Below are positions 18,085 through 56,340 of a stretch of DNA of 64,000 bases, piece after piece. Each line of letters opens with the position of its first letter. Within the stretch, counting starts at the first letter, position 1. A model generated the notes under the pieces. It saw only the letters and a program-made list of their open reading frames with translations. It did not search any database and was not told the DNA's origin. A program made the position numbers and the translations under genes. The stretch is from sequence record NC_070936.1. One strand, given 5' to 3'.

Positions 18085-18113
18085 ATTTACCCAATTATTT
18101 TTTTTTTCTCTTA

Positions 18114-27217: not shown

Positions 27218-27280
27218 TCTATACTTGTTTATTTTTTTTTGTTTTCATATTTTGATTAGCTTTATATAGAGGAAAGCAAA

Positions 27281-50461: not shown

Positions 50462-52075
50462 ATGTCTGAGAATATTCCTCAAACTGAAATGCAGGAGAAC
50501 GTGAACAAGGAAGCTGCAATCATTGCACTTACCAATGCTCTCGTTGGTCCAGCAGATGACTACGATCCATCACTGCCTATGTTCCTCGGTACCATGAAAG
50601 AAGAACATGAGGCGATCTACAAAACAGCAGTTGCTTTCCTGGGTTGGCGTGATGCAGCTTCTTCCGGTAAAGAACGTGAGGCTAATGTCCTCAAAGATCG
50701 TTTCGAAGAATTACGCGATACTCACTTTGAAGGCGTAGAAGAAGAATTACTTGGTAACATGCTTACCAACTACTTCCGATTCTATTTCAATGGCTTTGAT
50801 CGCGGGATGGTTCGTAATGCTACAGTTGATGTTACTCGTCAACGTAAAGTTATCAATACGGTACCAATGAAGAACGGCCAACGGTTGGGATTGATTTCTG
50901 CGATTACCCCTACCGTTAAGAGCGAAATGGGTGTGCGTGAACGTATGCGTCGTACATTCCTCAAAGCTTCAGGTTCTCCAGATAGCTTCAACGTTATCCT
51001 GGCTAACTCTCTGATCTTCTTACGTGTTAAGATTCCTACTCCATTGGATCTGGTTCGTCTTATTAACGACATCGTTACCAAGCTTCATATGTACGGTGAA
51101 CGTTATAACCAAACCTCTATCCATTTGGAACGTGCGGGTATCAGTCAGATCCTGGTAGACTTCATTCTGGATCGTGTCAGCTACCACAGCGTCAAAGGTA
51201 TCGATGATCCTATCGAACTGAAGAACTATATCCTCAGTAATGACATCAACCACTTAGCCCAAGCTCTGCTGAAAATCACTTCCCCTAAAGGTGTGACTTA
51301 CCGCATGAACTGCCTGGCTAATAAATGTGGCTGGTCTTCCAATATGGTAATCGATCCAGCTAACATGCTTCTGTATGTTGAAGAAGATCAGCCTGAAGAA
51401 CGTCGGACTCTTCTGTTCAAATTAGTTAACGAAGGTCTTAAACTTTCTCCTGAAGATCTAGCGAATAACCCTCCTGTCTATAAAGACAAAGATGGTAACG
51501 TTCTGGATACCACGGTTGAACTGACAGAAGGTAATGGTCGTCTGGTCATTGATGTTCCTTATCTGTCAGAATACTTCCAGGCTTATGATGAAATGGCTGC
51601 TCGCATTAACCCTGAGTTACGTGAGTTGGCTGTTAAGTTTGCTAACCCTCAGGTGTTTGATGAGAAACGTCGTGAGTATCTGGCCCAGATGCGTGGTCAC
51701 GAATATATCCAATGGTTCCGTTCAATGGAGTTTGATCCACCGGCTGACTCTGAAGGAACTAAGGACGTTATCTATCGTGAAGAGAACCCGAAAGAGTTTG
51801 ATGAAGGTTTGATGGATATCTTCAACAAAGACGATCAGATGTATTATCGTGCTCTGGAAAAGGTTATTACAATCGCACCTCGCATGACCTATACCTATGT
51901 GGGTATTTGTGAAGACGAGTGTCCGAACTGTAAAGAAAAATCAGAAGGGAAAGATCAGGACCAGTTACATAACTTTACTCCTATCGATCCTATCCTGAAT
52001 TTTTTCGACCATACCCGAATGATGATCTCAATCAGAACCGGTCAGCAGAGTTTACAAGAGGACGGTCTTTCCTAA
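50462..52075 (+). CDS. Conserved protein with T4 gp26-like baseplate/tail assembly chaperone features
   Basis: CLANKCG and CPNC Zn pairs and C-terminal NFF mirror T4 gp26 CTCG...CPECG...EFF. Confidence 0.55.
   Translation: MSENIPQTEMQENVNKEAAIIALTNALVGPADDYDPSLPMFLGTMKEEHEAIYKTAVAFLGWRDAASSGKEREANVLKDRFEELRDTHFEGVEEELLGNMLTNYFRFYFNGFDRGMVRNATVDVTRQRKVINTVPMKNGQRLGLISAITPTVKSEMGVRERMRRTFLKASGSPDSFNVILANSLIFLRVKIPTPLDLVRLINDIVTKLHMYGERYNQTSIHLERAGISQILVDFILDRVSYHSVKGIDDPIELKNYILSNDINHLAQALLKITSPKGVTYRMNCLANKCGWSSNMVIDPANMLLYVEEDQPEERRTLLFKLVNEGLKLSPEDLANNPPVYKDKDGNVLDTTVELTEGNGRLVIDVPYLSEYFQAYDEMAARINPELRELAVKFANPQVFDEKRREYLAQMRGHEYIQWFRSMEFDPPADSEGTKDVIYREENPKEFDEGLMDIFNKDDQMYYRALEKVITIAPRMTYTYVGICEDECPNCKEKSEGKDQDQLHNFTPIDPILNFFDHTRMMISIRTGQQSLQEDGLS
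52000..52006 (+). other. Candidate -1 ribosomal frameshift slippery heptamer T TTT TTC
   Basis: In-frame X XXY YYZ site; the -1 frame is open from here to 52518. Confidence 0.55.
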
Positions 52076-52152
52076 ACGACTCTAACTTTGATCCCCGTGT
52101 TCTGACACGCTGTAGTGAACTCTTCATCGCAGCGGCCAGGGAAACTGACCAT

Positions 52153-52518
52153 GTGAAATTAGCCGTCTTAGAAAGGCGGCTTTTCATGATCAAGTATGGT
52201 TATATCGCAGAGCAAGAATCGATGAGTTCCCATCTGCGGTATAATACTAATACTAGAGATTACTTCCACCCGTGGGCAGCTAAGGTCATAGGCCACACAT
52301 TCGGGGCTAGAGAGTATAGTAAATTCATTCCTTTCAAAGACTATCTTGAAATGCCAGTGGATTTTATAGAGGACTTCATTGAAGGTTTAGCAGAAGGTGA
52401 ACAAGCTGTCGTCAAAGCTAAACTGGAAGCCGCCAAACGTGAAGCTTCTAAACAAGGTGGTGTTGGTGATCCTCACCAAGCCGCTATCGCTTTAGCTCAA
52501 AAGAGCAATAAAGGATAA
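52153..52518 (+). CDS. Small conserved protein, possibly the C-terminal part of a frameshift product (gp51/GT-like)
   Basis: FKDYLEMPVDFIEDFI resembles the tail-chaperone second-ORF motif; frame open upstream to 51973. Confidence 0.65.
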   Translation: MKLAVLERRLFMIKYGYIAEQESMSSHLRYNTNTRDYFHPWAAKVIGHTFGAREYSKFIPFKDYLEMPVDFIEDFIEGLAEGEQAVVKAKLEAAKREASKQGGVGDPHQAAIALAQKSNKG

Positions 52519-54585: not shown

Positions 54586-54600
54586 ATTACTTATTTTTTT

Positions 54601-56340
54601 TTATGCTGCTTTCTTAGCTTCATTAATGAATGGGATTACAGACTCTTCATAGAAAGAGTTAATCTCAGTCAGTTGAGGCATACCGTAAATGGTATTACAC
54701 AAAGTCACCGCATTAGCAATTGGGGACGAAGCGTAGTTAACACCGACACGACGGAACTCGAAACGATCCAGACCTTCAATTTCACATACTTCCAACTTAG
54801 TTGTTTTGTTGGATACGTTAAGTGAAACTGTAATGTGAGGATATGCGCCCGTTACGTCGATATCATCCGTGTCGCCACGACCACGTGAACGCCATGAAGG
54901 AAGACCAGCATAGATTGGTTTACCTTTATCTTCATTAAGCTCAGCATGGAGCAGAGCGATCCAGTCACGAAGATCTGGCTTGATATCTTTCCAAATATCT
55001 TCTTTCTTACGGCCAACTGTTCCCCAAACATAACCATGTTCCAAAGCAATGAAAGATAACTTATCAGAAATCATTGATGGTTGTGATTGGTATGAACGAA
55101 GTTCAGAAGAAGTAATCAGAGAAGGCAATGACAGAGAGTAGTCATTAGTTACTCGGTTAAGATCTTCAATTACCCAGTTATCTCGAATGTTATACATTGC
55201 GTAGATATAAGGGAATTTCTTCTGCATGAATTTGTGCCATTCGGTAGAACCAGCTTGCAAGTGATCTGCTTCAGGAGTATATAACTTACCTTCTACCCCT
55301 TCAGCTTTAGCCGTGTTCTGTAACGAGTAAGATTCCTTCTTACCACCTGGAGCACGTTTAATCGCATAGAAAGACATCCCATCAAACCACTGCCACTTAG
55401 CAGGTGCCTGAAGAACAGGGAAACGTTCTTGAGGTTCTAGTGGCGATTTGGAACCATCAACCTTAGTTTTAAACTCACGACCTTTAAAATAGAAATAATC
55501 GCGATAAGGTTTAGGAACTTCTGGATCACTATATACGTCGGCTAAATCATAACCTTCATTAGTTAATGAATCTTCATTAGCTTGCATATCAAAGTTTGCG
55601 TTCCAGCTAACGACATAGTCTGGACCGATACGGTGAAATGCTTGAATGTTGTTATAAACAACTTGACCTGGAGTATCATAAAGTTCAAATACAATTTTGA
55701 CCTTATGTTTTTCCATGTACTCTTTCAAGTGTACTTCAGCTGCTTCATTCAGTTTACGCAGAATAGTCGCATCATCTTCCCCAGGGAAGAAGCTACGTAG
55801 GCCAGCCCAATATACTGTATCTCCACAGGTAATGGAAGCCATGTTGACACAACCGGTTGAACCATCATTATTGATATACGTTTCAACGTCGTATGCTGCT
55901 ACTTTATAAGCTTCCTGTGGTTGGTAATCAGGATACTTTTTATAGAAGCGTTCTTTAAAGATAACCGGAACACTTTCCTGACAACCAAATACATAAGGGC
56001 TGTTCTTTAATTCGCCCAGTTGAGCTTTACGATCTGGACGACCATAAAGACATTTACTAATTTGAACTGCCAAACGTGATTCATTAGAGCTATGCTTATC
56101 GCATTTAGCGATTTCAATGTAATCTCGTTTATCCTGGAATGTTTGATATTTCTTTTTGACGATATAGAAGTCTCGTTTAAAGTTTTCAATCTTAACTAAT
56201 CGATCTTCACGAGTACCGTCTTTACGAATGTTGGTTATCTTGGCAGTAAGTAAATCGTTACCGTCCATAAATTTGTTGAACGATAAGTATGCATGTTTAC
56301 AAACACGCCCAACAATTGGATTGTCAGTTTGATCTGTCAT
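54601..56340 (-). CDS. Family B DNA polymerase, N-terminal half with 3'-5' exonuclease and motif A (phiKZ gp82-like)
   Basis: ExoI AYDVET, ExoII SWNANFD, ExoIII YNIRD, motif A DIDVTGAYP near the C-terminus. Confidence 0.88.
   Translation of the reverse strand: MTDQTDNPIVGRVCKHAYLSFNKFMDGNDLLTAKITNIRKDGTREDRLVKIENFKRDFYIVKKKYQTFQDKRDYIEIAKCDKHSSNESRLAVQISKCLYGRPDRKAQLGELKNSPYVFGCQESVPVIFKERFYKKYPDYQPQEAYKVAAYDVETYINNDGSTGCVNMASITCGDTVYWAGLRSFFPGEDDATILRKLNEAAEVHLKEYMEKHKVKIVFELYDTPGQVVYNNIQAFHRIGPDYVVSWNANFDMQANEDSLTNEGYDLADVYSDPEVPKPYRDYFYFKGREFKTKVDGSKSPLEPQERFPVLQAPAKWQWFDGMSFYAIKRAPGGKKESYSLQNTAKAEGVEGKLYTPEADHLQAGSTEWHKFMQKKFPYIYAMYNIRDNWVIEDLNRVTNDYSLSLPSLITSSELRSYQSQPSMISDKLSFIALEHGYVWGTVGRKKEDIWKDIKPDLRDWIALLHAELNEDKGKPIYAGLPSWRSRGRGDTDDIDVTGAYPHITVSLNVSNKTTKLEVCEIEGLDRFEFRRVGVNYASSPIANAVTLCNTIYGMPQLTEINSFYEESVIPFINEAKKAA

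Follow-up and report, generated by a model that had tools for sequence, protein, structure and literature searches.

A probable family-wide programmed -1 ribosomal frameshift in the jumbo-phage core gene cg18, examined in Klebsiella phage N1M2

The region considered here lies in a stretch of 64,000 nucleotides (nt) from record NC_070936.1 (the window), which corresponds to Klebsiella phage N1M2 (100% identity across the region to MN642089, at matching coordinates). GenBank lists two separate hypothetical proteins on the plus strand: N1M2_67 (50462-52075), an open reading frame (ORF) of 537 amino acids (aa) that is the orthologue of the Chimalliviridae core gene cg18, and N1M2_68 (52186-52518; 110 aa). 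Close to the 3' end of N1M2_67, the zero-frame codons AAT TTT TTC (51998-52006) create the slippery heptamer T_TTT_TTC at 52000-52006, in the X_XXY_YYZ phase of a canonical -1 frameshift site, with TTT (F514) as the P-site codon and TTC (F515) as the A-site codon; this phase is common to the 36 genomes compared below. In the -1 frame, a TAA at 51970-51972 is followed by an open stretch that reaches from 51973 to the stop at 52518, running into the downstream ORF with no ATG, GTG or TTG ahead of GTG 52153; both this GTG and the annotated ATG 52186 are in the same -1 frame. A shift at the heptamer would join 515 zero-frame codons, counted through the A site, to 170 codons of the -1 frame (52006-52518 with the stop), giving a predicted product of 685 aa rather than 537 aa. 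The predicted extension begins in an overlap with the zero-frame tail (52007-52075; 22 aa and the stop), continues through 52076-52185, which is intergenic by annotation, and takes in N1M2_68, which is read here as its C-terminal part. The first-pass annotation had proposed a programmed -1 frameshift with two products at this site. Its description of the heptamer and its phase, of the closed and open parts of the -1 frame and of the two product lengths was correct, and the proposal is supported by conservation across 36 genomes spanning the family.

The 36 related phage genomes include OBP, EL, phiKZ-type phages, PhiPA3, SPN3US, Goslar, Ea35-70 and RSL2. A tblastn search with N1M2_67 found 69 phage records, and chaining the search via EL ORF047 and PhiPA3 gp074 reached 246 records, covering phiKZ-type, SPN3US-type, Ea35-70-type, Goslar, RSL2 and other clades. 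Protein identity to N1M2_67 goes down to ~25% among its own tblastn matches and is lower in the phiKZ-type clades. Some loci were added by single-protein queries, the family-wide alignment being too divergent to serve as a locus query. The downstream ORF is in the -1 frame in 36/36 genomes, and in all of them the -1 frame is open across an in-phase T-run heptamer that lies 31-79 nt ahead of the zero-frame stop; of 32 genomes, 22 have a distance of 73 nt from heptamer to stop. Throughout, the length of the -1 extension stays within 154-180 codons. Whether orthologues keep the heptamer and the open -1 overlap had been set beforehand as a test of the frameshift, and the outcome, with no exception among the 36 genomes, is strongly in its favour.

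The same comparison bears on the possibility of an artefact, in which a sequencing or assembly indel in the homopolymer has split a single 685-aa gene. Homopolymer indels are common sequencing errors, and the low-quality relative vB_PQ1 (L022, PQ516283), which was excluded from the counts, has a fragmented assembly in this region. The arrangement is nevertheless found in 36 genomes from independent sequencing on different platforms, the spacing between heptamer and zero-frame stop is conserved, as is the zero-frame tail ahead of the stop, and no protein of fused length is present among the database homologues examined. In-frame fusions are absent both from the 45 upstream homologues, all of which are 527-557 aa long, and from the 56 clusters of the downstream domain, 55 of which are 73-172 aa long; the one long match to this domain (P0070) was rejected as spurious, as it is a low-complexity protein of eukaryote type. 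We regard an artefact as extremely unlikely. In two EL-like records, vB_PQ1 and PQ287644 (HHBS8_1), the orthologue is split into several short ORFs or matched in two pieces, and these probably represent assembly errors.

Conservation of the slippery bases extends to synonymous positions. The heptamer is TTTTTTC in 22 genomes, TTTTTTT in ten, TTTTTTA in one and GTTTTTT in three, and the T-run consists of six T in 25 genomes, seven in seven and eight in four. The P-site codon is TTT in 36/36, whereas TTT is the minor Phe codon of these genes, with a share of 12-68% that averages about one third. The Phe pair is among only seven invariant columns of a 12-member family-wide alignment, and synonymous-codon identity is at its highest within the gene body at aa 510-524 (0.67 versus a gene mean of 0.48; 21 genomes). 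In phage Kc263 the A-site residue has changed from F to L and the seventh base to A, and the heptamer is still slippery. The base ahead of the Phe pair is T in 33 of the 36 genomes, and the codon to which it belongs encodes N, S, V, T, G, A or L. Since the T is kept through seven different amino acids, conservation of the protein cannot explain the heptamer; as judged from the alignment, the conserved T is the product of selection on the nucleotides.

The overlap and the stretch beyond it carry the marks of a translated -1 frame. The Serratia phages Sureiya and Yubaba are 85% identical to N1M2 across the region, and from the heptamer to the zero-frame stop (52000-52075) 74 of 76 nt are identical to these phages (97%). 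The zero-frame tail and the -1 peptide are both conserved, and invariant blocks of bases, which are attributed to dual coding, follow the heptamer and lie at the zero-frame stop. In the 36 'intergenic' codons of the -1 frame, N1M2 and Sureiya differ at two first, three second and 17 third codon positions, with 12 synonymous and five non-synonymous codon changes. Judged by this bias towards third-position substitutions, 52076-52185 is coding sequence read in the -1 frame.

These observations can be set against an explanation without recoding, in which the two ORFs are separate genes, the downstream one is translated from an internal canonical or non-canonical start (in N1M2, GTG 52153 or ATG 52186) and the heptamer reflects nothing other than conservation of an N-F-F motif. 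All 28 of the deposited records that were read annotate two genes and none records the long isoform, GTG 52153 has an AG-rich stretch in front of it, and the ATG found at 52186 is commonly shared by members of the N1M2 clade. However, GTG 52153 is GTT in Sureiya and Yubaba and is therefore lost even at 85% identity. From the opening of the -1 frame to the heptamer there is no ATG, GTG or TTG in 30 of 32 genomes; after the site, the first start-like codon is scattered between extension residues 22 and 86. The annotated starts of the downstream ORF range even more widely (residues 23 to 102), with gene callers choosing very different positions, and in Ea35-70 (L027, 2889) the deposited start was not an ATG, GTG or TTG in the codon scan, which shows the difficulty that gene callers have in placing it. 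Residues P2, P4 and R18 of the extension are kept in 81-90% of genomes and lie, like part of the coding signature, upstream of every start-like codon. The overlapping -1 ORF, open across the site, lacks a start of its own that would cover its conserved part. In one genome (L044) the -1 frame opens just one codon ahead of the heptamer, and entry into it must therefore be at the T-run. Two further points are difficult to reconcile with separate genes: the retention of the T ahead of the Phe pair through seven amino acids, which the motif would not require, and the -1 relation of the ORFs in 36/36 genomes, where one in three would be expected per independent lineage. We consider it very improbable that recoding is absent. 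A separate downstream product could coexist with a frameshift product; the first-pass annotation had allowed for independent initiation at GTG 52153, and while the loss of this codon in the two closest relatives and the scatter of starts weaken that suggestion, separate initiation could still occur at ATG 52186.

The combination of a heptamer and a long -1 frame is also rare in the window. Within long frames there are 27 in-phase slippery heptamers, and only that at 52000-52006 is followed by a long -1 frame (172 open codons, compared with a median of eight and a next-best value of 24). This arrangement is far beyond chance. Homopolymer runs are themselves depleted: under a first-order Markov model the window holds one A-run of at least six where 47.9 +/- 6.5 are expected, and six T-runs of at least six where 21 +/- 4 are expected. 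Apart from the T6 at 52000, no run of this length falls within the body of an ORF of 100 aa or more; the others are found between genes or at the very 5' end of an ORF. The depletion of A- and T-runs elsewhere suggests that slippage-prone runs are generally selected against across the genome. Outside ORFs, long T-runs are present at 18098-18107 (T10, ~20 nt upstream of ATG 18130), 27232-27240 (T9) and 54594-54602 (T9); they may be associated with promoters or terminators used in transcription by the phage.

Several observations weigh against a programmed ribosomal frameshift. No stimulatory element was found, neither a hairpin at 5-9 nt from the heptamer nor a Shine-Dalgarno (SD)-like motif upstream of it, in a search that had pseudoknots outside its scope. 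The minimum free energy z-scores of the downstream sequence are around 0 in 28 genomes, with folds no stabler than those of shuffled sequences, and the fold predicted from the alignment is weak (-3.25 kcal/mol, with 0 covarying pairs). The N1M2 lineage has, moreover, a terminator-like hairpin within the proposed extension, at 52161-52181 (plus strand), with a 9-bp stem and a 3-nt loop, followed by TTTTC and ATG 52186. No trans-frame or 'intergenic' peptide is seen in mass-spectrometry data from Goslar, which were searched against annotated proteins only and include a single peptide of the downstream protein, gp082. The AlphaFold2 model of the extension alone is poor, with a predicted local distance difference test score (pLDDT) of 49. 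Finally, position 1 of the heptamer is G rather than T in PhiPA3 and in two uncultivated relatives, and the element that is conserved throughout is a homopolymer of 6-8 T, a substrate for slippage by RNA polymerase in phages that use polymerases of their own.

The hairpin at 52161-52181 is more stable than its shuffles in N1M2 (z = -4.4), in Sureiya and Yubaba (z = -3.5 to -3.6) and in SXP01 (z = -3.9), in which one base pair is swapped on both sides. No comparably stable hairpin was found in other OBP-type phages or in the phiKZ-type clades, and in two Vibrio-group phages (PDCC-1 and Vibrio 2TSL) the aligned position holds a fold that is stable but unrelated. The hairpin could act as a terminator specific to this lineage, as a site of processing or as a control on internal initiation. 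A scan for sigma-70 promoters and terminators found nothing between the two ORFs, a result that has little bearing on promoters of phage polymerases.

The last of the points raised against a ribosomal event leads to the main rival explanation, transcriptional slippage, in which the phage or host RNA polymerase would stutter on the T6-T8 run and add one U to some of the mRNAs, the normal translation of which would give the same long protein. In addition to the homopolymeric nature of the site, the lack of a ribosomal stimulator in our searches would fit this explanation, as would the three genomes with G at the first position of the heptamer, all of which keep a T6 run, and the purging of A- and T-runs from the rest of the window, which is expected if the polymerase is prone to slip. 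By general knowledge of other systems, however, a run of six T is short for productive polymerase slippage, and the longer runs that would favour it are in the minority among the genomes. A polymerase slipping on a homopolymer would also not readily account for the selection, in 33 of 36 genomes and through seven amino acids, of a phase-specific base ahead of the Phe pair, nor for Kc263, in which the change of the seventh base to A leaves a heptamer that remains compatible with tRNA re-pairing. On balance, transcriptional slippage is an improbable explanation, though a less improbable one than the absence of recoding.

Taken together, the conservation, coding and frame analyses make it likely that N1M2_67 and N1M2_68 are one recoded gene, expressed through a programmed -1 ribosomal frameshift that is family-wide. 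Most ribosomes would translate 50462-52075 and stop, producing the 537-aa protein, while some would slip back by one base at 52000-52006. At the slip, the peptidyl-tRNA-Phe on TTT and the aminoacyl-tRNA-Phe on TTC would both re-pair with TTT in the -1 frame; one tRNA-Phe species decodes both Phe codons, and re-pairing on U_UUU_UUY would for this reason be complete. Translation would then continue for 170 codons to 52518, giving a protein of ~685 aa that has its first 515 residues in common with the short form and a different C-terminal domain. We infer that the shift is ribosomal rather than transcriptional, and that both isoforms have a function.

The identity of the gene is well defined by homology and gene order. 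Chained tblastn searches, synteny and orthologue matches in BFVD identify phiKZ gp077, PhiPA3 gp074, EL ORF047 and Goslar gp081 as orthologues of N1M2_67, and the annotation of PhiPA3 likewise equates gp074 with phiKZ gp077, 201phi2-1 gp136 and EL gp047. In the core-genome table, Goslar gp081, PhiKZ gp077 and RAY gp267 are the core gene cg18, described as a 'hypothetical protein' (Prichard et al., 2023). Membership of N1M2_67 in cg18 follows from its homology and from its position beside a virion RNA polymerase subunit and gp079/gp078-like genes. In N1M2 the neighbours are the beta' subunit of a virion RNA polymerase and a 'virion structural protein' on the minus strand, two more hypothetical genes and a T4-like DNA polymerase, and the gene order around N1M2_67 is unchanged in relatives.

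Neither N1M2_67 nor the downstream piece nor their neighbours could be named by function from searches of Pfam, NCBIfam and PHROGs; N1M2_68 belongs to PHROGs 19747 and 24181, which are of unknown function. The suggestion in the first-pass annotation that the downstream ORF carries a GT/gp51-like motif is accordingly unsupported. Profile searches of N1M2_67 and of 34 homologues gave no match of the T4 gp26/gp51 kind, nor did a search of the Goslar, PhiPA3 and SPN3US orthologues against NCBIfam, and the PDB yielded nothing by sequence or by fold search. The AlphaFold2 model of N1M2_67 (pLDDT of 79.6, predicted TM-score of 0.80) was compared with BFVD using Foldseek. Orthologues from jumbo phages were matched first, followed by T4-like predictions named after the baseplate hub: six such entries have E values of 4e-5 to 2e-3 and target-normalised TM-scores of 0.40-0.57, in a comparison where both sides are predictions and the names are automatic. 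Those named 'Baseplate hub assembly protein, bacteriophage T4-like', 'Baseplate hub subunit' and 'Baseplate hub assembly chaperone' have E values of 4e-5 to 7e-4, a probability of 1.00 and target-normalised TM-scores of 0.46-0.57. Tail-assembly-chaperone entries appear only at E values of ~1. The fold matches agree with the labels 'putative baseplate protein' and 'baseplate hub assembly protein' that some relatives carry in GenBank; the label 'ZipA-like' in some other records is unsupported here. The earlier description of the upstream ORF as gp26-like therefore holds at the level of predicted folds and finds no counterpart in sequence profiles. This modelled likeness to T4-type baseplate-hub assembly proteins is the best functional lead for cg18, and a role in tail or baseplate assembly can be put forward tentatively, as a possibility slightly less likely than not. 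Two neighbours of N1M2_67 in BFVD are close to the length of the long isoform, J7KJQ2 (Erwinia phage phiEaH2; 686 aa) and A0A8S5P0M5 (Myoviridae sp.; 687 aa), and their lengths are probably explained by the longer N-terminus of SPN3US-type orthologues (656 aa).

Mass spectrometry of Goslar virions lists gp081 with 24 peptides, 49% coverage and an estimated ~22 copies per virion, and gp082 with one peptide and ~3 copies (bioRxiv 10.64898/2026.04.21.720040, Table S4). Chimallin and PhuZ are found in the same preparation, which makes carry-over possible and the residence of gp081 in the virion uncertain (bioRxiv 10.64898/2026.04.21.720040). Both annotated parts of the gene are thus listed, in data that cannot tell whether they are joined. 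The estimate for gp081 nearly equals the one for gp078 (~21), the virion RNA polymerase subunit encoded next to it, which could reflect co-packaging or coincidence. One speculative reading is that both isoforms are packaged into the virion, in copy numbers similar to those of its RNA polymerase.

No description of a frameshift in cg18 was found in the literature, including recent jumbo-phage reviews; most subscription journals were outside the coverage, and an older mention is possible. The best reading is that the cg18 site is a previously undescribed, family-wide -1 frameshift of the canonical type in a core gene. It has direct consequences for annotation: ~250 deposited jumbo-phage records contain relatives of the gene, the long isoform is missing and the downstream start arbitrary in every one of the 28 annotations read, and core-genome tables carry only the upstream half of the gene. 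The frameshift has been kept family-wide, and neither a fusion nor a pair of clean genes has taken its place; this implies that the two isoforms matter, as does the ratio between them, and points to a role for this core protein in assembly or stoichiometry. A conserved bacterial -1 site with an all-U heptamer and no evident stimulator, in phages that separate transcription from translation, would also be a natural case for studying slippage efficiency. A more specific and rather doubtful reading is that the frameshifted pair is the jumbo-myovirus counterpart of the tail-assembly-chaperone frameshift, in which ribosome slippage would set the ratio between two isoforms of a hub or tape-measure assembly factor of the T4 gp26/gp51 kind. 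If true, this would supply the 'missing' G/GT analogue for T4-type and phiKZ-type myoviruses and give a function to a core gene.

The T4-type baseplate hub assembly proteins of the gp26/gp51 kind, to the named predictions of which the N1M2_67 model is matched in BFVD, are 226-285 aa long, about half the length of N1M2_67, and share no sequence-profile match or solved structure through which the likeness could be compared; we know of no frameshift in these proteins. Among bacterial -1 frameshifts, E. coli dnaX (tau/gamma) and orfA-orfB of the IS3 family resemble cg18 in using a canonical tandem-slippage heptamer and in making two products in a set ratio from one locus. Their heptamers are A/G-rich and are accompanied by an upstream SD-like element and a downstream hairpin, neither of which was found at cg18 in searches that excluded pseudoknots, and the dnaX shift shortens the protein. 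The -1 frameshift in the capsid gene 10A/10B of phage T7 follows the same recoding logic as cg18, with a slip on a U-rich Phe-codon site late in the gene that does not strictly depend on a strong pseudoknot and yields a minor longer isoform; it differs in that the protein is the major capsid protein, the extension is much shorter and the shift is not known to be conserved family-wide.

The frameshift of the lambda G/GT-type tail assembly chaperones, which Xu, Hendrix and Duda reportedly found in 2004 to be conserved in long-tailed phages, was the comparison drawn in the first-pass annotation. Membership of cg18 in this family is ruled out on three grounds: its position is not the one between the tail tube and tape-measure genes, N1M2_67 has 537 aa where the upstream product of the G/GT pair has about 100-150 aa, and its sequence matches no tail-chaperone family in Pfam, NCBIfam or the annotated PHROGs. 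G and GT are, in addition, absent from virions, whereas the Goslar orthologue of cg18 is present in virion preparations, where carry-over is possible. What stands of the comparison is the logic of the recoding. In both systems a -1 shift near the 3' end of the upstream ORF gives, or in cg18 would give, a minor isoform with a C-terminal extension from two separately annotated ORFs, and in both the arrangement of two ORFs, rather than an in-frame fusion, has been kept over a long evolutionary distance.

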